A stretch of 64,000 nucleotides of DNA from Paragordius varius (Eukaryota; Animalia; Nematomorpha). The notes beneath the pieces were generated by a model, which ran no database searches, had not been told where the DNA came from, and was given only the letters and a program-made list of their open reading frames with translations. The translations under genes and the position numbers were made by a program. Location of the stretch: contig OZ176056.1 in NCBI GenBank assembly GCA_964247055.1, forward strand, positions 1,178,001 to 1,242,000. Direction: 5' to 3'. This document shows, in pieces, positions 3,370-64,000 of this stretch (position 1 is the stretch's first letter; every line of letters begins with the position of its first letter).

Positions 3370-3521
3370 TTATTGATATATATAAATAAAATAGAAATAG
3401 AATTTTCAGATATAACAATTATTAAAAGTCTGACTTTTTTAATAAAGTGATTTTCCAATTTTAATCAACGCTGCACTAATGGTTTATTGATTAACTAATT
3501 AAGCTTTTAAACAATTTAAAC

Positions 3522-32300: not shown

Positions 32301-32672
32301 TTTATACTATGGTTAGTTTGAAAAAGTATTTGTCTTTGTATTTTTACTGTTATCTCTATAATTTCAATTTTTAGCTGTAAAATATTTTGAGAGATGTTCT
32401 GTTTGTATAAGCATCAATTTTTACTGTCTTACAAATCTCTTATATTATATATATATATATATATATTCGTACGACCCAAAAATTTTATGTATTTGTATAA
32501 AAACTAATGTGTGCATTTCTTTTTTTAGGCGGTTTCTGATAATTATCGCTTCTCATATGTTTTGCCCGATACGGAATACGAGATTGTGGTTAGACCAGTC
32601 TTTATAGATCAAGATGCCGCATCCACAGAAGCAAGTTCACATCGTGTTTATGTTCAAACGAATCACTGCTAA
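30357..32672 (+). CDS. Gene A: small secreted protein (~128 aa), FN3-like C-terminal half; exons 30357-30426, 31445-31468, 31646-31711, 31990-32000, 32247-32292, 32375-32400, 32529-32672
   Basis: All introns are GT-AG and phases chain without stops: MMNAIMRTLIYNFIACILLSQTT-AYRKQIVF-VIEIKDDNYSLNTNQSKTDIEQ-KPDI-DLTKIPNVSVTEFAI-TVKYFERCS-AVSDNYRFSYVLPDTEYEIVVRPVFIDQDAASTEASSHRVYVQTNHC*. Exons 1-5 are conserved in the paralog with mostly synonymous changes. AATAAA at 32713. Confidence 0.72.
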
Positions 32673-36700: not shown

Positions 36701-39700
36701 TAAACTCAAGTTAGCCAAGTCTTTACAATAAAATGTCCGGCAAAATCTGTTTTCAATCAATTCTCAACTCGTTCACAACCAAAACACCGTCTATCTTGTT
36801 ACTGAATGGCGGCTTCGGTGATGAGTGGATGTACACAATAATACTTTAATCTGTTTAGTCTTTACAGTAAACTCAAGTTAGGCAAGTCTTTACAATAAAC
36901 CGTCCGGCAAAATCTGTTTTCAATCAATTCTCAACTCGTTAACAACCAAAACACCGTCTATCTTGTTACTGAATTGGGGCTTCGGTGATGAGTGGATGTA
37001 CACAATAATACTTTAATCTGTTTAGTCCTTTACAGTAAATCTGTTTTCAATCGATTCTCAACTCGTTCACAACCAAAACACCGTCTATCTTGTTACTGAA
37101 TTGGGGCTTCGGTGATGAGTGGATGTACACAATAATACTTTAATCTGTTTAGTCTTTTACAGTAAACTCAAGTTAGCCAAATCTTACAATAAACCGTCCG
37201 GCGAAATCTGTTTTCAATCAATTCTCAACTCGTTAACAACCAAAACACCGTCTATCTTGTTACTGAAATGGGGCTTCGGTGATGAGTGGATGTACACAAT
37301 AATACTTTAATCTGTTTAGTTCTTTACAGTAAACTCAAGTTAGCCAACAATAAACCGTCCGGCAAAATCTGTTTTCAATCAATTCTCAACTCGTTAACAA
37401 CCAAACCGTCTATCTTGTTACTGAATTGGGGCTTCGGTGATGAGTGGATATACACAATAATACTTTAATCTGTTTAGTCCTTTACAGTAAACTCAAGTTA
37501 GCCAAGTCTTTACAATAAACCGTCCGGCAAAATCTGTTTTCAATCAATTCTCAACTCGTTAACAACCAAAATACCGTCTATCTTGTTACTGAATTGGGGC
37601 TTCGGTGATGAGTGGATGTACACAATAATACTTTAATCTGTTTAGTCCTTTACAGTAAATCTGTTTTCAATCGATTCTCAACTCGTTCACAACCAAAACA
37701 CCGTCTATCTTGTTACTGAATTGGGGCTTCGGTGATGAGTGGATGTACACAATAATACTTTAATCTGTTTAGTCTTTTACAGTAAACTCAAGTTAGCCAA
37801 ATCTTACAATAAACCGTCCGGCGAAATCTGTTTTCAATCAATTCTCAACTCGTTAACAACCAAAACACCGTCTATCTTGTTACTGAATTGGGGCTTCGGT
37901 GATGAGTGGATGTACACAATAATACTTTAATCTGTTTAGTCCTTTACAGTAAACTCAAGTTAGCCAAGTCTTTACAATAAACCGTCCGGCAAAATCTGTT
38001 TTCAATCAATTCTCAACTCGTTAACAACCAAAACACCGTCTATCTTGTTACTGAATGGCGGCTTCGGTGATGAGTGGATGTACACAATAATACTTTAATC
38101 TGTTTAGTCCTTTACAGTAAACTCAAGTTAGCCAAGTCTTTACAATAAACCGTCCGGCAAAATCTGTTTTCAATCAATTTTCAACTCGTTAACAACCAAA
38201 ACACCGTCTATCTTGTTACTGAATTGGGGCTTCGGTGATGAGTGGATGTACACAATAATACTTTAATCTGTTTAGTCCTTTACAGTAAACTCAAGTTAGC
38301 CAAGTCTTTACAATAAAATGTCCGGCAAAATCTGTTTTCAATCAATTCTCAACTCGTTCACAACCAAAACACCGTCTATCTTGTTACTGAATGGCGGCTT
38401 CGGTGATGAGTGGATGTACACAATAATACTTTAATCTGTTTAGTCTTTACAGTAAACTCAAGTTAGGCAAGTCTTTACAATAAACCGTCCGGCAAAATCT
38501 GTTTTCAATCAATTCTCAACTCGTTAACAACCAAAACACCGTCTATCTTGTTACTGAATTGGGGCTTCGGTGATGAGTGGATGTACACAATAATACTTTA
38601 ATCTGTTTAGTCCTTTACAGTAAACTCAAGTTAGCCAAATCTTACAATAAACCGTCCGGCGAACTCTGTTTTCAATCAATTCTCAACTCGTTAACAACCA
38701 AAACACCGTCTATCTTGTTACTGAATTGGGGCTTCGGTGATGAGTGGATGTACACAATAATACTTTAATCTGTTTAGTCCTTTACAGTAAACTCAATTTA
38801 GCCAGGTCTTTACAATAAACCGTCCGGCAAAATCTGTTTTCAATCAATTCTCAACTCGTTCACAACCAAAACACCGTCTATCTTGTTACTGAATTGGGGC
38901 TTCGGTGATGAGTGGATGTACACAATAATACTTTAATCTGTTTAGTCCTTTACAGTAAACTCAAGTTAGCCAAGTCTTTACAATAAACCGTCCGGCAAAA
39001 TCTGTTTTCAATCAATTTTCAACTCGTTAACAACCAAAACACCGTCTATCTTGTTACTGAATTGGGGCTTCGGTGATGAGTGGATGTACACAATAATACT
39101 TTAATCTGTTTATTCCTTTACAGTAAACTCAAGTTAGCCAAGTCTTTACAATAAAATGTCCGGCAAAATCTGTTTTCAATCAATTCTCAACTCGTTCACA
39201 ACCAAAACACCGTCTATCTTGTTACTGAATTGGGGCTTCGGTGATGAGTGGATGTACACAATAATACTTTAATCTGTTTAGTCCTTTACAGTAAACTCAA
39301 GTTAGCCATGTCTTTACAATAATCTGTCCCGAATCTGTTTTCAATCAATTCTCAACTCGTTAACAACCAAAACACCGTCTATCTTGTTACTGAATTGGGG
39401 CTTCGGTGATGAGTGGATGTACACAATAATACTTTAATCTGTTTAGTCCTTTACAGTAAACTCAAGTTAGCCAAGTCTTTACAATAAACCGTCCGGCAAA
39501 ATCTGTTTTCAATCAATTCTCAACTCGTTAACAACCAAAATACCGTCTATCTTGTTACTGAATTGGGGCTTCGGTGATGAGTGGATGTACACAATAATAC
39601 TTTAATCTGTTTAGTCCTTTACAGTAAACTCAAGTTAGCCAAGTCTTTACAATAAACCGTCCGGCAAAATCTGTTTTCAATCAATTCTCAACTCGTTAAC

Positions 39701-42700
39701 AACCAAAACACCGTCTATCTTGTTACTGATTTGGGGCTTCGGTGATGAGTGGATGTACACAATAATACTTTAATCTGTTTAGTCCTTTACAGTAAACTCA
39801 AGTTAGCCAAGTCTTACAATAAACCGTCCGGCAAAATCTGTTTTCAATCAATTCTCAACCAAAACACCGTCTATCTTGTTACTGAATTGGGGCTTCGGTG
39901 ATGAGTGGATGTACACAATAATACTTTAATCTGTTTAGTTCTTTACAGTAAACTCAAGTTAGCCAACAATAAACCGTCCGGCAAAATCTGTTTTCAATCA
40001 ATTCTCAACTCGTTAACAACCAAACCGTCTATCTTGTTACTGAATTGGGGCTTCGGTGATGAGTGGATATACACAATAATACTTTAATCTGTTTAGTCCT
40101 TTACAGTAAACTCAAGTTAGGCAAGTCTTTACAATAAACCGTCCGGCAAAATCTGTTTTCAATCAATTCTCAACTCGTTAACAACCAAAACACCGTCTAT
40201 CTTGTTACTGAATTGGGGCTTCGGTGATGAGTGGATGTACACAATAATACTTTAATCTGTTTAGTCCTTTACAGTAAACTCAAGTTAGCCAAATCTTACA
40301 ATAAACCGTCCGGCGAACTCTGTTTTCAATCAATTCTCAACTCGTTAACAACCAAAACACCGTCTATCTTGTTACTGAATTGGGGCTTCGGTGATGAGTG
40401 GATGTACACAATAATACTTTAATCTGTTTAGTCCTTTACAGTAAACTCAATTTAGCCAGGTCTTTACAATAAACCGTCCGGCAAAATCTGTTTTCAATCA
40501 ATTCTCAACTCGTTCACAACCAAAACACCGTCTATCTTGTTACTGAATTGGGGCTTCGGTGATGAGTGGATGTACACAATAATACTTTAATCTGTTTAGT
40601 CCTTTACAGTAAATCTGTTTTCAATCGATTCTCAACTCGTTCACAACCAAAACACCGTCTATCTTGTTACTGAATTGGGGCTTCGGTGATGAGTGGATGT
40701 ACACAATAATACTTTAATCTGTTTAGTCTTTTACAGTAAACTCAAGTTAGCCAAATCTTACAATAAACCGTCCGGCGAAATCTGTTTTCAATCAATTCTC
40801 AACTCGTTAACAACCAAAACACCGTCTATCTTGTTACTGAATTGGGGCTTCGGTGATGAGTGGATGTACACAATAATACTTTAATCTGTTTAGTTCTTTA
40901 CAGTAAACTCAAGTTAGCCAACAATAAACCGTCCGGCAAAATCTGTTTTCAATCAATTCTCAACTCGTTAACAACCAAACCGTCTATCTTGTTACTGAAT
41001 TGGGGCTTCGGTGATGAGTGGATATACACAATAATACTTTAATCTGTTTAGTCCTTTACAGTAAACTCAAGTTAGCCAAGTCTTTACAATAAACCGTCCG
41101 GCAAAATCTGTTTTCAATCAATTCTCAACTCGTTAACAACCAAAATACCGTCTATCTTGTTACTGAATTGGGGCTTCGGTGATGAGTGGATGTACACAAT
41201 AATACTTTAATCTGTTTAGTCCTTTACAGTAAATCTGTTTTCAATCGATTCTCAACTCGTTCACAACCAAAACACCGTCTATCTTGTTACTGAATTGGGG
41301 CTTCGGTGATGAGTGGATGTACACAATAATACTTTAATCTGTTTAGTCTTTTACAGTAAACTCAAGTTAGCCAAATCTTACAATAAACCGTCCGGCGAAA
41401 TCTGTTTTCAATCAATTCTCAACTCGTTAACAACCAAAACACCGTCTATCTTGTTACTGAATTGGGGCTTCGGTGATGAGTGGATGTACACAATAATACT
41501 TTAATCTGTTTAGTCCTTTACAGTAAACTCAAGTTAGCCAAGTCTTTACAATAAACCGTCCGGCAAAATCTGTTTTCAATCAATTCTCAACTCGTTAACA
41601 ACCAAAACACCGTCTATCTTGTTACTGAATGGCGGCTTCGGTGATGAGTGGATGTACACAATAATACTTTAATCTGTTTAGTCCTTTACAGTAAACTCAA
41701 GTTAGCCAAGTCTTTACAATAAACCGTCCGGCAAAATCTGTTTTCAATCAATTTTCAACTCGTTAACAACCAAAACACCGTCTATCTTGTTACTGAATTG
41801 GGGCTTCGGTGATGAGTGGATGTACACAATAATACTTTAATCTGTTTAGTCCTTTACAGTAAACTCAAGTTAGCCAAGTCTTTACAATAAAATATCCGGC
41901 AAAATCTGTTTTCAATCAATTCTCAACTCGTTCACAACCAAAACACCGTCTATCTTGTTACTGAATGGCGGCTTCGGTGATGAGTGGATGTACACAATAA
42001 TACTTTAATCTGTTTAGTCTTTACAGTAAACTCAAGTTAGGCAAGTCTTTACAATAAACCGTCCGGCAAAATCTGTTTTCAATCAATTCTCAACTCGTTA
42101 ACAACCAAAACACCGTCTATCTTGTTACTGAATTGGGGCTTCGGTGATGAGTGGATGTACACAATAATACTTTAATCTGTTTAGTCCTTTACAGTAAACT
42201 CAAGTTAGCCAAATCTTACAATAAACCGTCCGGCGAACTCTGTTTTCAATCAATTCTCAACTCGTTAACAACCAAAACACCGTCTATCTTGTTACTGAAT
42301 TGGGGCTTCGGTGATGAGTGGATGTACACAATAATACTTTAATCTGTTTAGTCCTTTACAGTAAACTCAATTTAGCCAGGTCTTTACAATAAACCGTCCG
42401 GCAAAATCTGTTTTCAATCAATTCTCAACTCGTTCACAACCAAAACACCGTCTATCTTGTTACTGAATTGGGGCTTCGGTGATGAGTGGATGTACACAAT
42501 AATACTTTAATCTGTTTAGTCCTTTACAGTAAACTCAAGTTAGCCAAGTCTTTACAATAAACCGTCCGGCAAAATCTGTTTTCAATCAATTTTCAACTCG
42601 TTAACAACCAAAACACCGTCTATCTTGTTACTGAATTGGGGCTTCGGTGATGAGTGGATGTACACAATAATACTTTAATCTGTTTAGTCCTTTACAGTAA

Positions 42701-43810
42701 ACTCAAGTTAGCCAAGTCTTTACAATAAAATGTCCGGCAAAATCTGTTTTCAATCAATTCTCAACTCGTTCACAACCAAAACACCGTCTATCTTGTTACT
42801 GAATTGGGGCTTCGGTGATGAGTGGATGTACACAATAATACTTTAATCTGTTTAGTCCTTTACAGTAAACTCAAGTTAGCCATGTCTTTACAATAATCTG
42901 TCCCGAATCTGTTTTCAATCAATTCTCAACTCGTTAACAACCAAAACACCGTCTATCTTGTTACTGAATTGGGGCTTCGGTGATGAGTGGATGTACACAA
43001 TAATACTTTAATCTGTTTAGTCCTTTACAGTAAACTCAAGTTAGCCAAGTCTTTACAATAAACCGTCCGGCAAAATCTGTTTTCAATCAATTCTCAACTC
43101 GTTAACAACCAAAATACCGTCTATCTTGTTACTGAATTGGGGCTTCGGTGATGAGTGGATGTACACAATAATACTTTAATCTGTTTAGTCCTTTACAGTA
43201 AACTCAAGTTAGCCAAGTCTTTACAATAAACCGTCCGGCAAAATCTGTTTTCAATCAATTCTCAACTCGTTAACAACCAAAACACCGTCTATCTTGTTAC
43301 TGATTTGGGGCTTCGGTGATGAGTGGATGTACACAATAATACTTTAATCTGTTTAGTCCTTTACAGTAAACTCAAGTTAGCCAAGTCTTACAATAAACCG
43401 TCCGGCAAAATCTGTTTTCAATCAATTCTCAACCAAAACACCGTCTATCTTGTTACTGAATTGGGGCTTCGGTGATGAGTGGATGTACACAATAATACTT
43501 TAATCTGTTTAGTTCTTTACAGTAAACTCAAGTTAGCCAACAATAAACCGTCCGGCAAAATCTGTTTTCAATCAATTCTCAACTCGTTAACAACCAAACC
43601 GTCTATCTTGTTACTGAATTGGGGCTTCGGTGATGAGTGGATATACACAATAATACTTTAATCTGTTTAGTCCTTTACAGTAAACTCAAGTTAGCCAAGT
43701 CTTACAATAAACCGTCCGGCAAAATCTGTTTTCAATCAATTCTCAACACGTTAACAACTAAAACACCATCTATCTTGTTACTGAATCACGGGCTTCAATG
43801 ACGAGTGGTT
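33720..43810. repeat. Satellite DNA array, 168-bp canonical monomer, about 60 copies, with higher-order duplications
   Basis: Unit ACAACCAAAACACCGTCTATCTTGTTACTGAATTGGGGCTTCGGTGATGAGTGGATGTACACAATAATAC... recurs at 34321 and 34489 (168 bp). All six frames are closed within the unit. Diverged monomers sit at both edges. Confidence 0.98.
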
Positions 43811-45404
43811 ATAAAAGACTAGGCCAGAAGGTTTTTTATCGATACATCAAAAACATCTTAATAGCATTACCACATTTTTCACACGATTTCAATTTGCCTT
43901 TCTCACTCTTATTTTTGTCACATATCTTATTCTCCAACTCTCGAAACAAACTACAAAAGACTTGCAGCCATTACATTTATTTTGATATCCAATATTTATT
44001 AATGTTTTATTAAATAATACATATATAACCCCAAATATGGGGTCATAACACCTTACAAAATAAAAAATAAATAATTTTAATCGTATATAATATTCAAATA
44101 TTCTGTGGTTATTTTATTTATTATAGTTTAGATATCTTGATATAAAACAATTAGACAGACACAGCGATACCGTATACTACCTTCAATTATTTAACCAAAT
44201 TAAAAGTTATTGGCAAGATATATTTAAAAAATAAATAAATTTTTAAAAATTAAAATTATGCAGTAAACAAAATGTAAAAACTAAAAACATATAAGTTTTA
44301 GAAAAGTTTACCATATTTCTTAACCAATTTTATAGAATCACCGTTTTGTGTTGCAAAGTATGATATATCGATTTACGATCATATAAACTTAAAAGATTAA
44401 TTCTAGTTTATGTAGGAATTATCTAGTTTTAAAAGAGTTGCTTATCTTATTAAATATTTATTTGTCTTTTAATTTTTGTTTTATCTGTAGATAATTTTTA
44501 TTGTAAAATCGTAAATAAAAAGTTTAAATGTCCACAAATTTGGGGGTGGTATGAAAAAGTACCCAATTATATATATTCTGATAAAAAAATGATAAGAATT
44601 CTATGTTGCTTTTGTTTTGGGTCTTACCATTAGGTTGTGAAAAACGGACGAACGGATCCTAAAATGAATGGTTCCCCTAAAATAACGGAACATGCCGAGA
44701 TTGCGTGTGAACACCTATGACATTAAAAAAATTTGTTTTAAGAAAAATGTTTTAAAACTAAGATTTTGGCAAAATATTGTGGAAAACGTATTGCATGCCA
44801 TTTTCAAACATACATGACGAACGCAGTTTAAATATACGCTTTTATAAAAAGACTTTTTTATATTATTAATAATGCTTAACATATCATCCTAGAATTTCGA
44901 TTAAAAAATAGTTTTTTTAAGTAAGTTGCATATATATTTTTACAAAACAATTTGGAAGCAAACAAACGTTTAATTCAAATTCCGATGTGATAAGAATGTT
45001 TATCATTGAATTATTTACTAAAAAAGTTTTTTTATCCTATAATTTGGCCGAAATAGGAGAGTTTTTGGTGTATTGCCAATTAGAGGCATTTCAGAATTAA
45101 TTTTGTTCAAAATAGTAGAAAGTTGGGTATGTTGTCTGACATATTTGTTTGGAGAAGTTTTTAAAGGATTTATTAATTAATTCGTTATGTATGTCCAGCT
45201 TTCAATAGTAATGTGAGGAATACTGGATCTGCTATTGGCTTTTAATTTGATATCATGCGACGACCAAATCTTATTGTATTTTTAAGGGGTTAAAAATTTC
45301 CCACATAGAATGTGTTTTAATGGTTAACTGGTTCCGGCAATTTCTTAAAATTTTTAATTTTATTAACTAATGCGAACAATTTTTAAATATATGATTTGAA
45401 TTCC

Positions 45405-45600
45405 AAAATATTTTATCAAAAAAATTTTTTTCGTTAAATGGGCATAAATATTTGGTAAAGAATGGAAAAAACAAGAGCTCTATATTAGTTCTTTATACCT
45501 TTAAATGATATGGTTAATACCATAGAGCTCTTGTTTTTTCCATTCTTTACCAAATATTTATACCCATTTAACGAAAAAAAATAAATTTTTGATAAAATAA
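45405..45600. mobile_element. Hairpin MITE (about 75-bp near-perfect inverted arms); second copy at about 50900-51085
   Basis: TTCGTTAAATGGGCATAAATATTTGGTAAAGAATGGAAAAAACAAGAGCTC ... GAGCTCTTGTTTTTTCCATTCTTTACCAAATATTTATACCCATTTAACGAA. Confidence 0.8.
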
Positions 45601-45969
45601 AGGATACATGACTGTAATTAATTATATGGTGGCTGTAATGGTCTTGCTTTTAATTCGATTAAAAATATTTGACGATATTTTTGAGCTGAGATGACTGCCT
45701 TCATTTTGAAGGAATCAGTTGTCGTTAATCCATCCTTTTTACATTTATGTTCCATAATTAGCGAAATTTAATTAATAAATGGCATAATCGTAACATTTAA
45801 AATTAAAATACAGGAATAAGTATTTATTAATTTTACTTAACCTCAAATAATGTGAAAAAGGATGTTTTTTGCTTCAAATTATAGTTTTATTTACTTAAAA
45901 ACTTATATTGTTGCTTAAATACATGTATTTCGCACGGATTTACAAATCCCTTCAAAATTAAATTTGTTT

Positions 45970-48035
45970 ACAAATATTTTAAATCTTAAAAACAATTTAA
46001 CATATTTTGCTTAGGCTGTTATAACGTTTAAGAAAGAATGTTTGTTAACTTGTTGTAGTTGGAACGTACCTTGTACTATGGATATCTGACCTTATAAAAT
46101 GTTTTTTAACATGAATATCAAAATATTTTTTTAAATATTTTATTAAATATTCCAATGATGAATGTTATTATGCGAACCTTAATTTTTAATTTTATAGCAT
46201 GTATTCTACTAAGTCAAACGACGGACGGTAATTTGCCGCAGTTTGTGCTTTTAGGAAATTTTTTGACTGCTTTAAATAGCAAATTATGTCAATTATTAAT
46301 TTTAAAAATAATTTACAGATTCTTTAGATTTTCACAGTAATAGAAACAGTCAGTCACCTATTAGATACCTTTAACAATAAGACGTCTCTACTTCATATCC
46401 GACCAATAACATTTTTAGACTTTAGCTATGAATTTTGAGTTTCTATAAATTGCCAACAATATATAAATTTAATATATTATAATACTAAATAAATATAACA
46501 AAATCGATTATGTTAAATAATCATTATATAAACGATTCATCATCAGTATGACCTGAACATTATGTGACAAATGGCATTCGTATATTTTAGCATTTTATTT
46601 TATGCTTGTCGGTTTAATATTTCTTTAGAATAAATAATAACGCAATAATTTACCTTAGTGATTAACCCATAATTTATTATTTGATAGACAAAATATATAT
46701 TTAAATATATTTGATTAAAATATGAAAAAATTAAAAACGTTTTATCCTTAATGAATAATAATCATATTTACTTTATATTAATTGCGAAAAAATCTGAATT
46801 TCAAATGATATCATTGTTTTTTTATTAGCAATATTGATTGTGATTGAATAGTTTAGTTTATATTATACTACCACCTCTTCATCTTGAATAAACTTCTTAT
46901 TAATTTTCATATTTCTCAATACCTTGGAATTTTTTTAGTATTATAATTTTAAAAATTTTCTTATGCATAAATTTAGGGCATTTAAGATATTCAAAAACAC
47001 ATTTATTATAGCGTTATTTTAAAGTTTGAGGGTGAATTTAAAGTTTTCAAGAATAAATTTGAGGAGTAATGGTATATTTTTTTTAAATATTGATAAAAGT
47101 TTGCGAATAATTTTCTTACGCCAATCGACAGGTTTTTTAAATTGATTCGTGCTATACGAATTTTAATATTTTTTATATAATTATATAGCATATCGTAAAC
47201 AAATTGTATTCGGTAAGGATATACACTTACATATTTTTATGTTTTTACCTGATTATGATTTATTAAATTACTTCAGAATATTAATATTTATGATTAATTA
47301 ATATAAATATAATTTAATAAAAAAAATATTTTAACAAAAGTCAATTGATATTTATTACATATGGATATTTATTAACATGTTAAATTAGTTATTGAGATCA
47401 AGGATGATAATTATTCACCTAATACCAATCAATCCAAAACGGACATTGAACAAAGTATATATATATATATATATATACTTTTTTAAAAAATATTTAAATA
47501 TGTATTTCAATGGTTGATACTAGAATTATTTTTTAAAATTGGTTCCAAATAAACATTTTTTGTTTTGACTTTTCCACATATTTTTTGAAAATAAACTTTT
47601 ATGATTTCATTTTAATGCCATATCGGTTTTAGTTTTAGTGTCTTTGATACAGCTGGTTTTTAAAGTCATTGTAAAATCTTGATTTCATATTTTTTAAAAC
47701 CATTTTTGTAAAGAACCGGACATCGTATGATTCTAAATCATACATAATAAGAGATTTTTAAAAAGGAAAATGTGAATTTTTAAACTGTTTATTACCGCGG
47801 TTTCGATTACAAATACAATGCTGTTTCTATCGTATTATAAAATAATTTATAATTAATATATTTAATATTAGGGATTTCAGAAAATATTCAAGTTATAATT
47901 AAATATAATCCCTTTTATGTTACCATAATTATTTTTAATATGCAATTATTAACTGGCTAATTCAAATTTTTTATTTTGAAGAATCTCACTAAAATACCAA
48001 ACGTGTCAGTTACTGAATACGCAATAAGTAATAAT
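45970..48035 (+). repeat. Second copy of the 2.1-kb segmental duplication
   Basis: Colinear with about 30155-32300. Confidence 0.93.
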
Positions 48036-51000
48036 TTTTGGATTAAAATATATAATCTTTATATATACCATTTACAATTCTAATTCACCCTCGAACAATT
48101 TAAATTCACCCTAAAATAAATTGAATGTTTTTTAAGATTAAACCTTATATTTTTATGTTTTGAAAGAATAAACATTTATTTAAAATTGAAATAATACTGA
48201 AAATTAATAAACAAAGGTAATAAGATATATTTCATATTAATAAGGAGTCATATTAGCCCGAAAACATCTAAATTATTTTAGGTTGATTTCAATTGTTCAG
48301 GGGTGAATGTGAATTGTTTAAGAGTAAATTTTAATTGTAAACGGTATATGCAATATTTTCATTTGGTTTAAAGTAGAGGTGTCCAACACTTCCGTGAAAA
48401 TTGGTGCGGCACGGGGAAAATTTGGAAATATATTTTTAAAAAATATGCCTATGAATATAAAATTAATATTTCTTAAAATATTTTCTATATTTTATTCGAT
48501 AGACAATAAACTAAAATGATGCATTTTTTAATATATATTAAAAGATCAAATATTTATAAATACCTATATATACAAAATATTTCAAATGCGGTCCGCCAAT
48601 TTTTTTGAGTCAAAAAGACCTGCGAAGCCATTTGTGTTGGATACCCCTGGTTTTATGATAATATAATATTAAACTATGTATTGTACGTGATTCTTTGTTG
48701 ATTCAGGGTTCCATATATCAGAAATATTGGTTTGACCGATTAAAAAATATTTCAGAATTAATTTTGTTCAAAATAGTAGAGAATTGGGTATTTTGTCTGA
48801 CATATATAGAGAAGTTTTTAAAGCATTTATTAATTAATTCGTTATGTATGTCCAGCTTTTCAATAGTAATGTGAGGAATACTGGATCTGCTTATCATATT
48901 TCTATTAGCCATATCATATGGTTGTTTTTGACTGGTTATTTTTAATACTTACAAGCACGAATTTGTAACCGGGGACAGTCTCAATAAGGAAAAATAGTAA
49001 AATTTGTTTAATTTTTTCAGATACAAATGAAACACAGTTGATGGATAAATATTATTATGAACAGGTCTCGTAATTATAAAACTTAATTATCTTCTGTATA
49101 ATAATGTTTACAGTAAAATTAAATTATACAGACTAAACGTAAAAAAATAAATACAAATATCATTCACGGCTATAGTTTTTAAGACTTGATTATTTCAATT
49201 ATAACTCATTGTTTTAAAATGCAAAGTATGAAATAAAGATGTTAATTGGTAACACAATTTATATATTCTACAATTGTAAATAAATAGTTTATATTGGAAA
49301 AATTAAGATTTCAAAAAGTATGATTGCTTTTCAAAAAAATATATTTGTCCTTATGTTTTAAGGTTTTGTCTTAGAATTCCGATTTTTACTGTACAATATA
49401 AATTTAGGCTATATAAAAAAATTTAAACATACTTTTTTAGGCAGGGCCAGGAGAAACAAGTAAAAGCGTGTGGGTATTATTCTATCTAAATTTTATGTTG
49501 AACATGTTTTAACAAAGATAATAGATAAATAAGAAATATAAATTTTTATTACAGCATGCATTTTAATGGTTGCTTATTTTACACTATAGTAGGGCAATTT
49601 GCAACACAGTATTTAATGTATGGAAAAAACAACAAAATGTTGGATAAACAATTTATTCCTTTCTTTTTTCCATACATACACTCCTGTGTTGCAAATTGGC
49701 CTATTATAGTGCAAAATAAGCAACCATTAAAATGGATACTGTATATAACATTTACATTTCAAATTCACCATTAACAATTCAAATTCACCCTCGAACAATT
49801 AAATTCACAAAAATAAATTATGTGTTTTCGAACTAATATCTCATTATTATTTTATATATATCTTATTTTTACGTAAAAGAACTTATTACCTCCTTTTTTA
49901 GTCTAAAGGTTTTTATATTTTTACACAATAATCAAGGATCTTTATAAATTTGTTTAATAATTGGAAGCAGATATTGGGCAGTTTTTAAAGCTCATATTTA
50001 GGATTAAAGAGCATCCACTTATTTAAATAAAAGCTTAACGATAATTGAGAATAAAAAAACAAAATTTGATTTGACCGATTTGGAATACAGTTCCGAAACC
50101 ATTTTTGTAATTCGTAATTTTAACGGTTAAAGATTTTAATGTGAAGTTTTTAAATAATAATGAGGAATTCATTTTCAATATAGCTGTGAATATAAAGAAA
50201 GACCCTAATAAAACGGTATTTATATTCAAAAAATTGCATTAATAACCAGGCTTTATTTTTGTGTTGATAGGAAGAAGTTATTAATAAATTAATTATTAAT
50301 TTTATTGATATTGCATCATATTAAAAAAAAATTTAATTTGCTTACTTTTATTATAATTATAAGATTTTAACTGACATTTTTCCGTGCTTAGAATTTTAGC
50401 ATTATAAAATTTCGATATCATTGCGATACGTTTAAAATAAATTCAGTGGTATGAAATTGACATTAAATAAAACTTTATAGTAATATTAAAATTCTTAGAA
50501 GAAGTATGAAGAGCCGAACAAAACAAACCCAATTTCCAAAGGTCGGACTCAAGTATCAAAATATATTTGATATAAAAAGGACTCTGTCATTGATGAAAAA
50601 AAACTTTCAGCTGCTTCTCCTGGTATACTATTTCTACATAAATTCATATATTTTAAAATAAATTTTAAATGAGACACCTTGAAATAGTTTGACATAATGG
50701 CATTTATTTTCATTTTTAAGTATTTAATTTAAGGATTTTATCAATAAAAATAAAAACAGTACATTAACATTTTAAGATATAATAAAATTAATTACTTTGA
50801 TGACTCATAATTTAATATATGAATGGGTAAAGAACAGGGGTAACTAATACAAATGGCTTCATGGAACGCATTTTTGACTTTCAGACATGTATCCTTTATT
50901 TATTAAAAAATTATTTTTTTCGTTAAATGGGAATAAACATTTGTTAAGAATGGAAATAGCTCTATGGTAATACTTATACTTTTTTGATGAATATGATATT

Positions 51001-54000
51001 GTTAATACCATAGAGCTCTTTTTTTCCATTCTTTACCAAATATTTATACCAATTTAACGAAAAAAAATAATTTTTGATAAAATATTTCGTAATATATATA
51101 AATATATACAAATTATTCACCAATTTAGCAAAATTTATCCAGAAAATTTGAATATTTAAAAATTTTATTGGCATATTTTCCCATTCATTATATTTTCATA
51201 TTTAATTGATAATTTACAAAATATGTTGAAGGACGGTGTAGGATACCCCTGAATAAAACATAATTTTAAGAATTACATCATTTTTAATCTTGTAAAAGAA
51301 TAATACCAGTTATTTAAATTTTTTGTGCATAAATATCGAAGAGTTTTGTCTTAAAAATTTATTTCTAATTGAAATTAATCATGGAAATAAATTAGTTGTG
51401 GCAGCGATCGGAATAGGTAAATGTCTTATAAATATATTTTTGCTTTATAAACTTCTTAGGTGCTCTAACTCCACAAGGTATTTCTTATAATTAATTTACA
51501 TCAAACATAAAATTTAGTAATTTTAACCGTTAAGATTTAGATTAAAAAATATAGAAATAATTAAATAATTATATTTTATCCAATATTTGATAAATATTGA
51601 TATTTATAAAATTCTTTATTGCTAAATTGATTTAATTTTCAGAATTACTTTAAATTTGTTTTAATGTTATATTTTGGACCATTTTACATAAATCTTTTAA
51701 ACTAGTTATTATTAATGGTTAAAATGAGGCTTTATTACGCTCATGTAATTCTTATGATTAAAATTTACCAAAAAAATAGCACAATAAAAATATTTTTTAT
51801 TAAGTTATATTAATCAATATTTTTAGTGGCAGGTAAACTATGATTTGATTTATATTGCAAATATTTTAATATTACCGGATAAAAGTTCAGGACAACCGCA
51901 ATTTAATACATAATTTATTATTTATTCGAAAATAAAATTTTTGAATTATGGTAAAATAAATAAATTACCTTATTCATACAAACAAAAGGGAAAAACTCAA
52001 AGAAAGATTTCTTTCTATAAAAGACAACTCTTTCTTAAAATCTTGACTTATTATAAAATTAACTTAGCCTTTTGTAGCTTCCAAAATGATATGAGATTTA
52101 ATAAAAACATGAATTTAATTTTGGGGAAAATCAAGGCAAAAGAATGATTAACTTTGTGAGAAATCCTTATTTTTAACGTTTTGTCCGTATAGTTTCACAA
52201 AACATATTCTTGTAACAATAAAGAACAAGTTTTGTTTCAAAGAGGCTAACTGATTTGACCTTTTTAAGATATGAACTTATATTAGTTTGTATGAATATAT
52301 CTAGTGTTATTTGATCCTAACTCTCCATATTTTAATTCAAAATTATTTTATTTAGTGCAAAGAAAATATGAAAACATTTATGTTTCAGCCATTACTTATT
52401 TTCTTTGAGTCGTATTTAAAATTGCTTCATTTCAACTTGTATGTATATATACAGTACAGTAAAAAGTGATATTATACGGACCAAACGTAAAAATATTAAG
52501 ACAAAATTTTTATTTCAAAAGACCACCATATTTTTCATAAAACTCTATAAAAATCATTTAATCGCAATAAATACATAATTAATTGTTTTTCCAATATACA
52601 TCTTTAATACATACTTTACAGTTCAAAACAAGGAATTATACAGTAAAAACTGAATATATACGGACAAGTAAAAATTTAAAAAATATTTTTTATATTTTTT
52701 TAAATCTAAATCTCCATATAAATTATTTAACAATATGTAAAATATGTAATTGATTGTGTTATCAATATATTTATATATCCAATTTTGCAAACAATTATTA
52801 AAATTTTAAAAAAATATGATTTAAAAAGTATGGTTGTCTTTTAGAAAGAAAATATTTGATTACAATTTGTCCGTCTAATTTAGATTTTTACTGTATATTT
52901 ATCATTCTAAACCGACAACATTACCAAGAAATCTGATAAGGAATAAAGAAAAAAAGATTTATTTGCAAGAATTGTAAAATATCAAAAATATATCTTTACT
53001 ATTTTTCAAAAGCTTAAAAATGGTTACATTTAATTGATTTTATTGCTTTTTGCTCTTTATGAGGTCCCCAAAAAATAACAACTAGTCAAAACTATTATTT
53101 AAAGTCAAGATCTATTTAAACATCGAAACATGAGCTTATTTTTTAGCGCGTTACTATAGTTTGCTGTGAAGGCCATTTAAGGCGAGACGAATGTATAAGG
53201 ACTCTGATTTTTATAAAAATTAATTTTGGCATATTGTCATTTTTTTCTAATAAAGCAAAATTAAAGAGTTAACTGACGAAATATATATATAAATTTAATA
53301 TAATTTTCTTTAATTACGATAATAAGTTATTCACCTACTATAACCATAAAAACATAAATTTTAGCCTTGTAATTTTTGTATGAATTTCCAACTTTATTTT
53401 GTTATTTTAATTAAATAATTTTTTTTTACTAATTGCTTTGTTTAAAAAACGGTCACTTCATCGATAATTTTTCATATTTTTAATTATATAAAAATATAAT
53501 TTATAATACAGATTTTTAAACATTTAGCTACTGTCCTCACAGGTAAAACTCAAATAATTTTTACAAATAAAAATATTGTAGATGGAGGTATATAATTTGA
53601 TCAAAAATTTATATGTTATGATAAAAATTAACTATCAAATTAACCATATATTATAAAATTTACTTTGGTTTATAAATTTTATTTTATTTTAAAATAGTTG
53701 AAATCACTGAGGGAGCCAAATTGGTTGAAACAATTGCTAATACTGGTAATATATATAAATATAATTAAATATTTTTAAAATAACTTTTTGTTTTGTAATT
53801 TTTGGTTTTTTAATATTACAATATGTAAACACACTGCAAATTATTAAAAAATTTTAATTGAAATATTTGCTGAAACCAATTAAAATCTATTTTGGAAATT
53901 TTTATACATTGATTAAAAATCTAAACATCTAGAAAATGGAGGCGAATTGGCTCAATTAGAACCAGGTAATGACAAGTTAGTGTTAATTTTTGGTGGCAAA

Positions 54001-55088
54001 ATAATTAACAAATTTTAAAATTTGTTCAAATACCATTATTTTTAGAAGCATTTTTTACTTTTTTTGACTGTTTTATACCCTAACCTATGTATTTTTGGGG
54101 GTTAGTGTTTAAAAATCAAAAAAACATACTTTTTAATTAAAACCAAATATTTAATTTTTATCAGGGCTCAGTATAGATCCACCAACAACTGAAGGTTTTT
54201 TTAATTCGGCATTATCTATTTATACATTATTTTATGATAATATAAATAAAAGAATTAGAAAATACTATTGTTGTTGAAAAATTAAGACACTAGCCTGTGA
54301 TTTTTATACTTTTTATCTGAAAACATATATTCTTTAGGTTCTGATAATACCATATCTGAAATTACCCCACAAAGCACATTAGGTTTTAATTAAAATACTA
54401 GCTAAATATTTTTATGATATACATATAATTTATTTCCAATTATATTTTAAACAGAGGCCACAGAACCCCAACCTGGACCATCCGGTCTTCAAAGAAGTAG
54501 ATTTTTATAAAAAAATTATTAGGTTATATGACCTTAGCCGTGCCCGCTTTCAAAAATATTCAAAAACATCATATGATATGGTGGATGTACAATTATGTTT
54601 ACAATAAATTTTTAGCTAAAAAATTTGCTTGTGTTTTAATTTAATAATATTTGGTTTGTAATTTATTAAAATAAATTAATAATGCCTATATTATTTTTGC
54701 TTCCAAAGTTTTTTAACATATAAGCAGTTTAACCCTAGGTCGGCTAAATATTATATCAATTATGAAATGTATGAGTCCATATCACATATCATGAAACCAA
54801 ATTATAAAAAATAGGTCTCCAAAAAAACTGATGAAAATTTTTTTAACCTTTTAATTAATATGCAATTAAAATAGACATCTTTAAAAAGATGTATGACAAT
54901 AAAATACCATATTTTACATAAAAGTTTAAAAATAATCACGAAATTATAAATTATATATAATTTGGCTAATTTATATTATGTAAATAATGCATAAACTTAG
55001 GGTCAGTTGACAGATAAAATTTAAGGCCAAAATTAAGTTAGTTTTTAAGACTCCATTTAAATTTTTGCTTATCCAGTTCTGATCTTAA

Positions 55089-55132
<44 letters not shown>

Positions 55133-58100
55133 AAATTTAGACTCTGAGGTAGTTGACGATGATATAAGCGGTATAATTTACATTTTAATCCAAAAAAGAA
55201 ATATTTTAATATTTTAAAAGCCGATATTTTTTGCAAATAATGAATTGTTAAATATAGAGTTATTTATATATATAAGTAATCTAGACTTCTTTGTTTAAAT
55301 AAATTCAAAAAAATAAATTGGGTACTCAGCATTTTTTAAAACAAAAGGGGATAAAGTCATTTGAGATTGTAAATTCCTTTTTATTAAGCTTCATTTATTT
55401 GGATTAACAAATATATATTTTTTTAGAAAGGTAACCATAAAACTTTTCATCACTTTATATATACACATAAAACTCCTCTATCAAAATTGTTTCAGATCGG
55501 ATAAATTTGACTTAAATACGATTAAGGTTAAATCAACAATTTATAATTTCTTTCGTATATCAATTAAGGACTTAGGCCAAGTATACTATTTATAATATTT
55601 TACATAAGGCAAAAGATTTAAAACCAGCCATGCCAGAATCGTTCAAGGTAAAAACTAAAAAAAATTTCATACTTTTTCAAAAAAGAATTTTAATCCACTT
55701 CAATTATAAAGGCCGACAAATATTGGAGCGTATGTTTTTCAAATCTAAAATTTTTCATATTAAATATTTTTATAAAACACATCTTTTAAAGCTAATTAAG
55801 CAATTTTGAAAACCACTTTTGCAAATATTATATATCGTTTTGATTTTAACGCTATAAACCATATATTTCAGATGTCGAAAATTTGAATACAGGTATTTAG
55901 TAATTTATTGATATATTGAATATATTTACATAATTTTACATCTGTAGAAGGATCTAATCTTATGGAAGGTATATGCCTTACTTATAATCAATATTGATAA
56001 AAATTAAAATTATAAGGACAAAGCATGAAAACTAACGCCTGGAAAACCAGGTCATAAAACCAAAATCAGAATGTTTTCTGCTCGGTTATAACCACAATCG
56101 GGTTGTAAAAAATTTAAAATAAACAGCCTGGCTTATAGTATAACTTTTTAATACCGGTTTTTAACAAACCGATCTCTTAGATGTATACTGACTTTTCAAT
56201 AAATACGTTTTATAAAATTTATTTATTTTTAAAATATAAACCGAAATTCAACTGTTATAAATTAAAATTTATTGGAAGAATGATGATAAAAAGTATAAAG
56301 TTAATGTATAATTTATCATTATCACATTCTAAAAAAATTATTTAGCTTTAATGCATTGAAATGAGCAAAAAGTATTTGTAAAAAACAAATATATAATTAT
56401 CGAGAAGTTTGTTTAAAAACATAGTCTTACTAAAAACTTAAGTTACTTATATGGATATTTGGCTAATTTAAATAATTTAGGTGTGAAGAGTTTTCATATT
56501 TTCCCATTTTTTCTAGTATTGGTTTATGAATTTATACTGGTTGTACGCTTTTAAGAGACTTGTGTTTTTGTATAAAGCCAGATTAATTTAAACCGCAGCC
56601 CTAAAAGCTCTTTTACGGCCCATTAAAATTTTTAAGGAAATACCACTGCGATTGACTTTCAATTCCCTTTAATCCTTATGAGAGGCCAGTGCCCTAAAAG
56701 ATAAATAATGCAAATAACCAAGAGAAACAAATGTTTTGTGTTTTAACTCTTTTATTTAGTAGCACGTTTAAAAATTTTACCATATTTGTAATATAAAAAT
56801 CTTTAAAACATAAAAAAAAAATCAAAAAAACTTAAATCTGATTTTTTATATCTAAATGTATGACTTAAAATAATTTATAAGATTCCAATAAGGTTTAAAT
56901 TACTTTATGGCAGCTGATATATTTTTAAAATTTAATTTGAATTTTAAAAAGCTCGACTATATAACACTAGTCGACAAATTTGGACATTTTTAAGCACCAC
57001 CACTCAAACTTTTTAAATTATGACTAATATCAGTGTTTTAAAACCGAATTTGAAAAAACTTTTGATCCCGTTAATCAGAAATTTGAAATTTTATAGGTTT
57101 TTCAATTTTTCAAAAACAAGAGAAAATCAAGAGTAACCTTATAATAAAATGTTATTATATTATTAACTTAATATCATTTAATAAAGCGTTTTAAACTCTA
57201 TCTTTTGAATATAAATATGTCATTTAAATATCAGAGAGAAAAAAATAGTACGGACTTAAACGTCAAAATTTAGCCTTTTTTTTCAAGTGAATTTTTAACA
57301 CTATAAAATTTTTTAAATACTAAAATAGGCATTCTATGGTTTAAACCTTCGGCTTTCAGATAGGCTATATTTTTTTGTTAGATTTCGTTCTTTCGAGTAC
57401 TTATTAGACTATTTCTCTTGAGTTGGTTCTTATAAAAAATCCTTCTATTTATACCTAGTGGATATACCTTATTTTTTGAAATTATTGGTTGTTTTGTATT
57501 TTGAATTTCAGATGGATGTTGTGTAGCTACTTTTAGTGTTGAACCATTTGTATTTACCTAATTTATAATCAATTTGATTGTAGAATTTATCTAACTTTAT
57601 TCTGTAAATTGGTTAATTTGACATTTGCAAGTCTCTCTTATCGGACTTTACCATTACTTATTGTTATCTTTGTCATAACTGGCATAATTATAGGATCGCT
57701 TGGGGGATATATAGAGCTTGTGCAGCCGCCCATATCTATCACACTATACATAAGCCCCTTTTAGATTTTTAATACTTTGGCTCTTAGCTTGTTTAGTATC
57801 TTATTTAATGCCTAGAATTTGTTATCCCTTCATGGAATATTACTTGTATCGACTTGCTTGTTTGAATATTTAAACATATGTACACGAGGAATGATAGTTA
57901 TTTTTGAATTAAATAAAAATTTAAAAATTTAATTTTGGAAAAATCCGTGGCCTCAATTTTATTTTTTGTTTTGGCCTTTCCATGCCATTAGGTATCAGAA
58001 AATGCAAAAATAATGGGGTGGTGCAAAACCTTGTTGAGCAGTGTAATTATACCATTTTTAGTCAAAAGCGACATTTATTCATCGCAACATTTTTCAGCTA

Positions 58101-60588
58101 AAAGAACCATTTTTAATTTTATTTGGATAGAAAACGTTGCGTTTGGTTAAAAAATAATATGTAGAATCATGTGATTTCAAGATGGAATAACTTAAAAAAG
58201 ATTTTTTTGATTATATAATGTTTATTGTATTTTCCCAAGAACTGCTGAAGACTCTAATAAAATTAAACTATCAATGTTTTAGCATATATATACCGATTTT
58301 TATAAATCGATGACCTTTTATTTTTAAATCAATATAGCTTTGTATTACAATATACTCTTCAAACATTTTAGGATCTAATCTTAATCCTATGATTTTTATG
58401 TGTTATTTTGCATTTTATTTTTTAAAATCTTTAATTAAAATTATCCATATATATATAATTAGAATCAAAAAACTTTTTGGAGGAAACGCGAAATATTAGT
58501 AACATATTTTTATTATATAGTTTTTATTATAAAAATTATATTTAAAATATTTTGATTCGAGATTAGGTCCAGAAAATATAAGTAATTTTTATGGCAATAT
58601 AATTTATAAATTTTAATTAAATCATTAAATTTCATAAAGATCGGGCCCATATTGGTATTTTTTTAAAATAAATAAATGAAACTTGGTTTAATAAAAAAAA
58701 TAATTGTAGTAAAGATTAATTTAAGAACCCAGATTAGGATAAACTTTGCAAAAAAAGTTAAGTAATTTATATAAATTATGTTTAAATTAATTATTGTGAT
58801 TTAATTGGCGACATTAGTTTAAAATCACCTAAATTACTATTAATTACAATAAAATATTTGATTTAAATTAAACTGGGTTTCAAGGACACTTTCAAATAGT
58901 GATTTTCCAATCTTTTCTAAATTCAAATCACATGGAATATGGGATTAAAATTGTTAATATTTTAAAAATGATATTCTCTTTGATGGAAATTTGCTTTAAA
59001 GTTAATCTTTTGTGTTTTGCTTTATTATTTATATGATTTTATAGACGGCATGAAAATATCCATAAAATGTATACTTTATAATAATAAAAATTGAAAAAAA
59101 TTTCAAAATTCAATAAATTATATATTTCAAATTTAGATTTGAAAGAGCGCATTAGCAGTATATTTTTTGCATGGCTAATTTTGTTACAGACTTTAATATA
59201 TAAAAATAATATTTTTGGTTTTAAACAATATATATATATATATATCTAGATATGATGGACACTATTCAAGGTGAAATAAAGCTTTCTTTTTAATAAACGC
59301 AAAAACTTCCCAAAAAAGTTTTATTTAGGCTTAAATTAAATTTATAATATCTTAAAAAATTAATTTTAAATATTCTATTTTATAATTTATCGGTTTATTA
59401 ATTAAAGTAAAAATTGGAATTACACGGACAAAATGTAGATATTTTTTCTAAAAGACAACCATACTATTAAATCTTATTTTTAAGTCATCTGATGAATATT
59501 GGAAAAACAATCAATTTTATATTTTAAAGTGGTTAGTAAATATTTTATATAAGAAAAATAAAGGTATAAAAAGTATGGTTGTATTTTGAAATTACATTTA
59601 GTCCGTATAATCCAATATTTATTGTATATTTTAAATTTAATTACAATATAGGAATTTTATAGTTTTAATTTGAAAGAACATCCACGAAATTTTTTATTAA
59701 TACAAAAAAAATTAATTGGGTTTAATAAAAAATACTTTAAAAATTTGGTTTTAATTTATAAAAGCAACAAATTTTTATCCATTTAACAACAAAGGATCCT
59801 TATATAGCGGGCTTCATTTTTTCATAATTATGCTATCTTAAATTAGATTTAATCGACAAAGCAAATGAAAGTGAATAATTATAATATAATTATTATTAAT
59901 TATTAAATAAAATTGAAAAAAAATATATTTAAAAAACTTGACAAATTACTTAATTAATTATATAATTTTTTTCTTTTAAAATATTGTTAATTTGAATATA
60001 TCAAATATCTGGTTATATGGCATAATTTTAATTATTAATTTTATTTTTTTAGGTGCCATGATTCCAGATGCAGGAGTAGACGGTAATAAATTTTTTATAA
60101 AATTGTACAATATAATTTTATTTTTTTTAAAAAATTATTTTTAATAATTTTATTATTTCGATTGTAATTTAAGCAAATTGATAATCCTGTCATACATGAT
60201 GTCAAAATCAATAAATATAATTTGGAATAGAAAATTTGAAACCCATGTATAAATTGACTGTAAAATTGTATGTACAATATATTTCCTATGATAAAGAAAA
60301 AAATATTTATTTAATATTAATTATGAGTTCTTTATTTTATTTGTTATTCATTATACTCGATAATAATCAATATAAATTCTAATTTGGCAAAATAAACTAT
60401 TTTTTTATGATAATCCTAGATGCATTAGGCTTAGAGGAATCTGATATATCAAAAGGTATATATAGATAACAAACTATAACATACAGTATTAAACATTAAT
60501 AATATATATTTGCTCATGTGATATATAATTCCTAATTTTAGAAGTTTTGGAAGAAGCCATTAGAAATCTAAAGCCGGCACCTGAATAA
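46155..60588 (+). CDS. Gene B: micro-exon gene (MEG-like), secreted low-complexity protein of ~325 aa, about 34 exons
   Basis: Signal-peptide exon 46155-46227, then 47189-47212, 47389-47454, 47714-47724, 47982-48027, 49021-49064, 49441-49459, 50184-50215, 50499-50541. Symmetric phase-1 exons follow: 50611-50622, 51405-51416, 51460-51477, 51827-51832, 53528-53542, 53582-53587, 53698-53745, 53933-53965, 54165-54194, 54338-54382, 54455-54496, 55141-55170, 55569-55580, 55609-55647, 55712-55729, 55872-55892, 55948-55968, 58567-58581, 58640-58654, 59045-59068, 59137-59157, 59250-59270, 60053-60082, 60420-60455. Last exon 60542-60588 (EVLEEAIRNLKPAPE*). All are AG/GT bounded, stop-free and GC-richer than the flanking introns. 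Confidence 0.72.
48064..48348. mobile_element. MITE of the TATACCATTT / 21-bp subrepeat family, in a gene B intron
   Basis: TATACCATTTACAATT...AATTCACCCTCGAACAATT on the left and AATTGTTCAGGGGTGAAT...TGTAAACGGTATA on the right. Confidence 0.7.
48374..48649. mobile_element. hAT MITE
   Basis: TAGAGGTGTCCAAC ... GTTGGATACCCCTG, same TIR type as the 6425-9227 element. Degenerate TSD GTTTAAAG/GTTTTATG. Confidence 0.75.
49557..49737. mobile_element. Small inverted-repeat element (MITE-like)
   Basis: CATTTTAATGGTTGCTTATTTTACACTATAGTAGGGCAATTTGCAACACAG ... CTGTGTTGCAAATTGGCCTATTATAGTGCAAAATAAGCAACCATTAAAATG. Confidence 0.75.
52455..52895. mobile_element. MITE with TACAGTAAAAA...TACGGAC termini; related copy at about 59400-59620
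   Basis: TACAGTAAAAAGTGATATTATACGGACC versus GTCCGTCTAATTTAGATTTTTACTGTA. Similar ends at about 59403 and 59600-59620. Confidence 0.6.
56965..58050. mobile_element. Truncated copy of the CACTAG-ended element (inverted relative to 2250-3369), in a gene B intron
   Basis: Begins CACTAGTCGACAAATTTGG and is colinear with the reverse complement of about 2250-3369. Confidence 0.85.
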
Positions 60589-60670
60589 CTTATTTGTCAT
60601 ATATAAGATTTTTCTAATGAATATGATAGATGAAATATTGTAGCAAAACTATTCACTAAGTTATTTATCC

Positions 60671-60676
60671 AATAAA
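60671..60676 (+). promoter_or_regulatory. Candidate polyadenylation signal of gene B
   Basis: AATAAA 83 nt after the predicted stop. Weak evidence on its own in AT-rich DNA. Confidence 0.35.
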
Positions 60677-60859
60677 TATATTTGATATGTGTTTATATTT
60701 CTAATTGAAGGGAAAAATAAAACAAAGACTAATCGTTTAGAAGTAACTTTAAGTTAATTTTAGATGCTTGTAAATTATAGAAACTGCATTAGCCTTAAGA
60801 AAAAATTTACGTATAGATACTTTTCGAAATAGACATGCATCGCAAATATTGATTTAATT

Positions 60860-63157: not shown

Positions 63158-63607
63158 GTAACATATACATCATTATAAGCAAGAGCAATTTTAATTAATT
63201 TTTTTTGACTGTTGATTGATTTAATATTCGGCTTGTTTAATGCTATCTCTAGTTAGTTTTCATTTTTTAATTAAATATAAATTCAAAAATTAAAAATTGG
63301 TTTGAAAATTAATTTATGGACTAATTTTATTTATTTTTCCAATTCCCCTTTAATCACCTCATATATAATTTTTAAAAAAAAACAACGCTTATAAAATAAT
63401 TAACATTTTGCTGATTTTTATGAACTTTTCTGATTTTTTAAAATAAACCTTCTCGAAATGGTTTGTTGGTATTTAAAACGCTCTAATCCATCATTTAATC
63501 TAAATTATTTTAAATTTCATGTAAAATAAAATACCATAACTGATAAAATTGTAAATCTCACAATTTAACTTTTATATATTCTTTAAAAATGCATTGATGC
63601 ATAAATA

Positions 63608-63650
<43 letters not shown>

Positions 63651-63666
63651 TAATTCCCCCTTAATA

Positions 63667-63870
63667 ATATACCATTTACAGTTCAAATTCACCCTTGAAC
63701 AATTGAAATTCACCCTCGAACAATTCAAATTCACTCTTGAACAATTCAAATTCACCCTCGAACAATTCAAATTCACCCTTGAACAATTGAAATTCACCCT
63801 CGAACAATTCAAATTCACTCTTGAACAATTCAAATTCACCCTCGAACAATTCAAATCACCCTAAAAATAA
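63667..63870. repeat. 21-bp tandem repeat (~9 units) expanded inside a TATACCATTT-family MITE in an ACC intron
   Basis: AATTCACCCT(C/T)GAACAATT(C/G)A units with variant order A-B-C-B-A-B-C-B. Confidence 0.9.
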
Positions 63871-64000
63871 ATTATGTGTTTTCGAACTAATATAACTCAT
63901 TATTAATATAAAATATATCTTTATGGCATAATTAATTATTTTTTTCAGTATTATTTTAATTTAAAACAAAATTTTATTTTTAAAAATATATAAAAATATA

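Follow-up and report, generated by a model that had tools for sequence, protein, structure and literature searches.

A probable hidden micro-exon gene, with a putatively secreted and disordered product, in the hairworm Paragordius varius

The question raised by this locus is whether a chain of tiny candidate exons in very AT-rich DNA is a gene or a chance assembly and, if a gene, what kind of protein it would encode. The locus lies in 64,000 nucleotides (nt) of the genome of the hairworm Paragordius varius (Nematomorpha; GenBank assembly GCA_964247055.1, contig OZ176056.1, positions 1,178,001 to 1,242,000 of the forward strand), here called the window, to which all coordinates refer. The window is mostly 20-27% GC, and 18-27% across the gene region. 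From the letters alone, a micro-exon gene (MEG) like those of Schistosoma had been proposed here, with a hydrophobic first exon at 46155 and a chain of at least 24 symmetric phase-1 micro-exons between 50611 and 60455 (the original prediction). Our analysis suggests that a hidden micro-exon gene encoding a secreted, disordered protein is probably real, with a true exon number that we estimate at 18-25.

The locus as a whole is best explained, with good though incomplete confidence, by one gene on the + strand from ~46.1 to 60.7 kb (Table 1). Exon 1 would encode a cleavable, signal-peptide-like N-terminus and end in phase 1, and after it would come some 17-29 tiny exons of 6-66 nt, almost all of them symmetric (phase 1-1). 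The AT-rich introns between them would range from 39 nt to about 4 kb and contain transposon debris. The predicted product would have 218-291 amino acids (aa), with a mature form that would be acidic, Cys-free, intrinsically disordered and secreted; constitutive splicing of the exons was taken as the default assumption. Two models were assembled, a full model of 30 exons (876 nt, 291 aa) and a strict model of 18 well-supported exons (218 aa), both shorter than the ~325-aa protein first proposed. All 24 exon lengths of the original prediction mapped to AG/GT-bounded, stop-free phase 1-1 segments, and the quoted peptides were reproduced. In the full model 25 of the 28 internal exons are of phase 1-1 and 6-66 nt long, and the frame is unbroken from the ATG through an asymmetric trio of 44, 33 and 43 nt to the stop codon. 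The strong exons carry neither frameshifts nor stops, and since nearly all exons end on G, the junction codons are GNN.

The evidence that carries this reading comes from comparisons with chance. Region 1-29000 contains real genes and transposon open reading frames (ORFs), which makes it a weak control for long exons; chance was judged instead from the - strand and from Markov simulations. In a frame-blind scan, AG...GT segments of 12-90 nt were scored only by exon-like versus intron-like composition, and position -3 had to be a pyrimidine, position +3 a purine. With the threshold set at 12, 15 of the 20 non-overlapping candidates on the + strand were multiples of 3, compared with 2/11 on the - strand (binomial p = 1.7e-4; Fisher p = 0.003). 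The original prediction had warned that its exons were partly selected by frame, so that their perfect symmetry was overstated; the frame-blind scan answers this, since the excess of multiples of 3 survived in it. Candidates of 9-18 nt open in phase 1 and scoring at least 14 numbered 10 on the + strand and 0 on the - strand. When GC islands were defined by composition only, 12 of 30 were bounded by AG and GT in the + orientation, 11 of them coinciding with model exons. The last exon base was G in 15/17 strict exons and in 8/12 of the extra ones, compared with a background of ~0.2 before any GT in the region; the excess in the extra exons (binomial p = 6e-4) concerns a feature that lay outside the scoring.

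For each exon, the chance expectation was obtained from 100 order-3 Markov simulations of the region, in which equal-or-better candidates were counted, and the observed candidate counts were several-fold over this expectation. At most 0.3 chance matches were expected for the exons at 51396-51416, 51827, 53528, 53582, 53698, 54455, 55609, 58640, 59045 and 60053, and 0.4-1.8 for those at 47389, 53933, 54165, 55141, 58131, 59137 and 59250.

The 5' part of the model ties the chain to a start codon. The hydrophobic first exon at 46155 was recovered, and upstream of the chain it alone among hydrophobic exons combines an ATG start with a phase-1 donor; the interval from 46.3 to 50.6 kb contains no rival first exon that is both signal-peptide-like and followed by a compatible donor. 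Four exons added here (exons 2-5) connect it in frame to the micro-exons. Exons 3-5 add up to 120 nt (44+33+43) and run through phases 1>0>0>1, back to phase 1. Exon 3 (49021-49064) is supported mainly by this frame closure with exons 4 and 5, and exon 4, which has a stop in phase 1, is readable only behind the frame-shifting 44-nt exon 3. Alternative donors at 49069 (49-nt form) and 50552 (54-nt form) were tried and rejected, as no combination of them closes the frame.

The peptide of exon 1 has a 10-residue core with a Kyte-Doolittle mean of 2.75 behind a basic residue, and a polar Ser-Gln-Thr-Thr-Asp end, a signal-peptide-like arrangement that suggests entry into the secretory pathway. The mature protein is rich in Glu, Thr, Ser, Pro, Asp and Gly, with a predicted isoelectric point of 4.1-4.4 and a grand average of hydropathy (GRAVY) of about -0.7, indicating a hydrophilic chain. 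No cysteine is present in the mature protein of either model (218 and 291 aa), nor was a second hydrophobic segment found in it, and there are four N-x-S/T sequons. As a prediction of disorder, the Uversky charge-hydropathy test placed the mature protein on the disordered side. We read the product as a secreted, glycosylated and intrinsically disordered protein.

Several observations weigh against this reading, or against parts of it. At least 2 chance matches were expected, a level inseparable from chance, for the exons at 50611, 51405 (the 12-nt form), 54338, 55569, 55712, 55872, 55948 and 60420. Thus 8/24 of the originally listed exons, about a third, are individually no better than chance, which places the figure of at least 24 exons at the upper end of the likely range, although all 24 segments exist. 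The composition score is crude, and undervalues 54338 and 60420, whose peptides match those of their neighbours. The exons at 55569, 55609, 55712 and 58640 have AAG acceptors, unlike all strict exons, and Arg, His, Phe and Met are commoner in the peptides of the doubtful exons than in those of the strict set. The two 15-nt exons that follow one another in the original list are ambiguous, with four candidates at 56070, 57382, 58131 and 58640; candidate exons 57382 and 57512 were discounted because they lie inside the repeat at 56961-58047. A dynamic-programming model gave other frame-consistent chains at 55.2-59.3 kb, where most exons cannot be told from chance picks. That model, with splice matrices trained on 18 strict exons, was over-fitted: its number of internal exons shifted between 24 and 72 with the penalty chosen, and it was set aside. 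The link of exons 1-2 to the chain from 49 kb is made by phase compatibility alone, and hydrophobicity was the sole basis for calling the signal peptide. Lastly, symmetric exons are never required to keep the frame, and for that reason none of the micro-exons is proven individually, including the 6-nt exon at 51827-51832, which is dispensable in this sense. The DNA directly shows the anatomy of the locus, the frame statistics and the asymmetry between strands; splice use at these sites, secretion and disorder are what we infer from it, and a role for the product as a secretion, a cuticle component or a host-interface factor is a guess.

The general design, a signal-peptide-like exon and behind it a long series of symmetric phase-1 micro-exons among introns of 0.04-4 kb, agrees with the likeness to Schistosoma MEGs originally proposed. 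Those genes have a signal-peptide first exon, symmetric exons that are multiples of 3 (3-81 or 6-36 bp) and introns of 0.1-5 kb; they yield isoforms by exon skipping, encode orphan secreted products, are hard for gene finders and have been described as specific to Schistosomatidae. As in them, most of the coding sequence found here lies in symmetric micro-exons between much longer introns. Unlike them, the predicted product is 218-291 aa long, compared with 189 aa for the longest aligned MEG; the hydrophobic/aromatic motif that follows the MEG signal peptide is absent from our model, as judged by eye, and so are the cysteine motifs of one MEG clade.

This likeness raises the alternative that the locus is a generator of variation, in which the 1-1 cassettes are skipped combinatorially and secreted variants are displayed at a host interface. 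The architecture is that of the published MEGs, where skipping yields many isoforms, and each 1-1 exon could be skipped in frame. Further variants would be added by alternative donors at 54484/54496 and by tandem acceptors at 51396/51405, which are 9 nt apart and both keep the frame, the outer one scoring better and the inner one having been used in the original prediction. However, frame-neutral exons permit skipping and do not demonstrate it, and the 44/33/43 trio could not be skipped one exon at a time. Symmetry is moreover a general rule for exons of disordered extracellular proteins, and one study associates symmetric exons with structural disorder (PMC3632108). Compared with that general rule for phase 1-1 modules, the shortness of the exons here (6-21 nt) and their number per small protein far exceed what is usual. 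Combinatorial variation is an unlikely account of the locus, and we favour a single gene, by default assumed to be spliced constitutively, whose architecture may be read as modular growth of a disordered secreted protein: any 1-1 exon could be gained, lost, duplicated or skipped with the frame kept. That such a system evolved independently in this lineage, as originally suggested, is plausible.

Other gene families share parts of this design. The bicycle genes of aphids encode an N-terminal signal peptide and have on average about 17 exons, with unusually small internal exons that nearly all start at codon position 2, which we read as phase-1 introns; paired CYC (Cys-Tyr-Cys) motifs define their proteins, and strong expression in salivary glands is a further mark of these genes. 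The putative hairworm gene resembles them in its many small internal exons starting at codon position 2, but it comes from a different phylum, lacks the paired CYC motifs and has no Cys in its mature protein. By architecture only, the gene appears to be built like the MEG and bicycle families, and we assign it to neither. A signal-peptide exon with many small symmetric exons behind it is also found in vertebrate SCPP genes (caseins, enamel and salivary proteins); their products are acidic, disordered, cysteine-poor and secreted, and they grow by exon duplication, with exons of phase 0-0. The hairworm model shares with them the signal-peptide exon, the many small symmetric exons and the acidic disordered product, but its exons are of phase 1-1 instead of 0-0, and no homology to SCPP genes is to be expected. 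Among the papers listed by searches of a full-text library, none paired micro-exon and hairworm terms.

The beginning of the gene is duplicated within the window. A segment of 2.07 kb at 45972-48038 matches 30160-32303 with 85-88% identity, and the duplication takes in the promoter and the first two exons, together with intron 1 and part of intron 2. In each copy the ATG, the hydrophobic core and the frame are intact, as are both splice sites. The upstream copy of exon 1 (30357-30426) is 90% identical, its sole indel being an in-frame 3-nt deletion, and that of exon 2 (31646-31711) is 95.5% identical without indels, with 3/66 positions differing, two of them synonymous. The introns of the duplicate are less conserved than exons 1-2 (79-84% identity), but since some intron windows are equally conserved, this gives modest support for the exons. 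Downstream of the upstream copy and before the satellite array that follows it, no phase-compatible exon chain was found. The array, which lies between the two copies at 33728-43808, is 10 kb of a tandem 168-bp satellite (about 37% GC, 95% matches); variants of 127 bp recur in it at regular intervals, and there is a higher-order period of 335/336 bp. Just upstream of the duplicated cassette, the interval 29001-30000 is only 11.5% GC, with a strong skew of T over A.

The duplication suggests a second alternative, in which the 5' cassette is a movable module and the locus holds either two transcription units, with a transcript of its own for the chain from 49 kb, or a shared 3' body, with the cassettes at 30.3 and 46.2 kb serving as alternative first exons for the same downstream micro-exons. 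The limits of the duplication, from the promoter through part of intron 2, the preservation of ORF and splice sites in both copies, and the missing chain between the upstream copy and the satellite would all fit such an arrangement. Against it, a separate transcript would have no other compatible signal-peptide-like first exon within 46.3-50.6 kb, and under a shared body the upstream copy would need an intron of >17 kb containing the 10-kb satellite. We regard both forms as quite improbable compared with a single gene starting at 46155.

Finally, although 10 kb of this sequence hold 118 phase-1-open AG/GT candidates of the listed lengths, many alternative chains can be drawn and several listed exons have chance scores, it is very unlikely that there is no gene, or a decayed one, the chain being a chance AG...GT assembly in AT-rich DNA or a dead remnant, given the strand asymmetry, the frame-blind excess of multiples of 3, the excess of G at -1, a frame intact over 30 segments, and promoter and poly(A) signals, none of them expected by chance, together with undamaged strong exons.

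Words shared with sequencing runs were also considered. About half of the words in the 10-kb stretch, its introns as well as its exons, occur in runs X1-X4, which are probably DNA. The small same-sample run X10 contains 0.56 of the sampled words of 60542-60700, corresponding to the last exon and the 3' untranslated region, and is not among the runs listed for the intron-including 10-kb stretch. This pattern hints that the gene is expressed and proves nothing.

Table 1. Features of the putative micro-exon gene and long ORFs elsewhere in the window
Feature	Coordinates	Strand	Observations
TATA box	46093..46098	+	~60 nt upstream of ATG; conserved in upstream duplicate
Exon 1	46155..46227	+	73 nt; ATG and hydrophobic N-terminus; phase-1 end on G; donor GTAATT
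Exon 2	47389..47454	+	66 nt, phase 1-1; absent from original prediction; frame-blind score 14.6
Exon 3	49021..49064	+	44 nt, phase 1>0; low GC, weak donor GTCTCG; absent from original prediction
Exon 4	49441..49473	+	33 nt, phase 0-0; frame-blind score 25, among stronger candidates; absent from original prediction
Exon 5	50499..50541	+	43 nt, phase 0>1; donor AAG|GTCGGA; absent from original prediction
12-nt exon, first of original prediction's chain	50611..50622	+	Phase 1-1; good CAG acceptor, CTG|GTATAC donor; 2.2 chance matches expected
21-nt exon	51396..51416	+	0.06 chance matches expected; 5.1 for inner-acceptor 12-nt form (51405)
18-nt exon	51460..51477	+	Phase 1-1, behind 43-nt intron; about 0.3-0.4 chance matches expected
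6-nt exon TGGCAG	51827..51832	+	Strong TTTTTAG acceptor, CAG|GTAAAC donor; 0.04 chance matches expected
15-nt exon	53528..53542	+	Phase 1-1; 0.29 chance matches expected
6-nt exon ATGGAG	53582..53587	+	Behind 39-nt intron; 0.29 chance matches expected; unproven
48-nt exon	53698..53745	+	Phase 1-1; 0.0 chance matches expected
33-nt exon	53933..53965	+	Phase 1-1; AG/GT-bounded GC island; 1.75 chance matches expected
30-nt exon	54165..54194	+	Phase 1-1; donor GTTTTT; AG/GT-bounded GC island; 1.3 chance matches expected
45-nt exon	54338..54382	+	Phase 1-1; donor GTTTTA; peptide composition fits neighbours; 4.3 chance matches expected
42-nt exon	54455..54496	+	Phase 1-1; 0.0 chance matches expected; 30-nt form via inner donor 54484 possible
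30-nt exon	55141..55170	+	Open in phase 1 only; 0.9 chance matches expected
Doubtful zone	55569..55968	+	Five exons of original prediction (next two rows)
Doubtful exons with AAG acceptors	55569-55580, 55609-55647, 55712-55729	+	
Doubtful exons with good AG|GT sites and low GC	55872-55892, 55948-55968	+	
Intronic repeat	56961..58047	.	Non-coding for chain; 89% identical to 2232-3373, other strand
Uncertain zone	58131..59270	+	Five exons of original prediction (next row); 0.07-1.1 chance matches expected each
Uncertain exons	58131-58145, 58640-58654, 59045-59068, 59137-59157, 59250-59270	+	
30-nt exon	60053..60082	+	Phase 1-1; top frame-blind score; 0.0 chance matches expected
36-nt exon	60420..60455	+	Phase 1-1; AAG|GTATAT donor; acidic peptide like that of last exon; 3.7 chance matches expected
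Last coding exon	60542..60588	+	Phase-1 entry; ends in TAA
AATAAA polyadenylation signal	60671..60676	+	84 nt downstream of stop
Galactosyltransferase domain protein	17298-18503	-	Long ORF
Retroelement protease and reverse transcriptase (pol)	22280-23443	+	Long ORF
hAT transposase C-terminus	26085-27131	-	Long ORF
Spin-doc zinc finger	27297-27893	-	Long ORF

Other features were noted in and around the gene region. Introns of only 43 nt (51417-51459) and 39 nt (53543-53581) stand beside introns of 1-4 kb in the same putative gene. A GC-rich island of 46 nt at 53147-53192 carries TTTTTTAG as a strong acceptor and GTATAA as its donor; being closed in phase 1, the island falls outside the chain. 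The interval 60108-60154 is a low-complexity A/T stretch within an intron, and the dispersed 1.1-kb repeat found at 56961-58047 and 2232-3373 is probably a transposon fragment. An Rfam scan of 44000-60100 returned only sub-threshold hairpin matches, to palindromes like those of miniature inverted-repeat transposable elements (MITEs), which leaves no known RNA as an account of the unexplained GC islands. Long near-perfect hairpins at 49562-49732 and 45456-45549, with sub-threshold matches to unrelated microRNA families on both strands, look like MITE-type palindromes and not microRNA genes; short repeats related to them were found at 48058-48348, 49736-49867, 20437-20701 and 63600-64000. Elsewhere in the window ordinary long ORFs are present, so tiny exons are not universal among the genes here.

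Hairworms parasitise arthropods and alter the behaviour of their hosts. It is improbable, on present indications, that they own a convergent micro-exon gene family of which this gene is a member, with exons skipped combinatorially at the host interface; if true, the design would have arisen independently for a third time, flukes/tapeworms and aphids being the earlier cases. The combination of a signal peptide with symmetric phase-1 micro-exons in a third unrelated parasitic lineage would indicate that a means of building or varying fast-evolving secreted proteins had arisen by convergence. Since standard gene finders miss or mangle genes made of exons of 6-50 nt, the secreted proteome of this little-studied group of parasites may be under-annotated.

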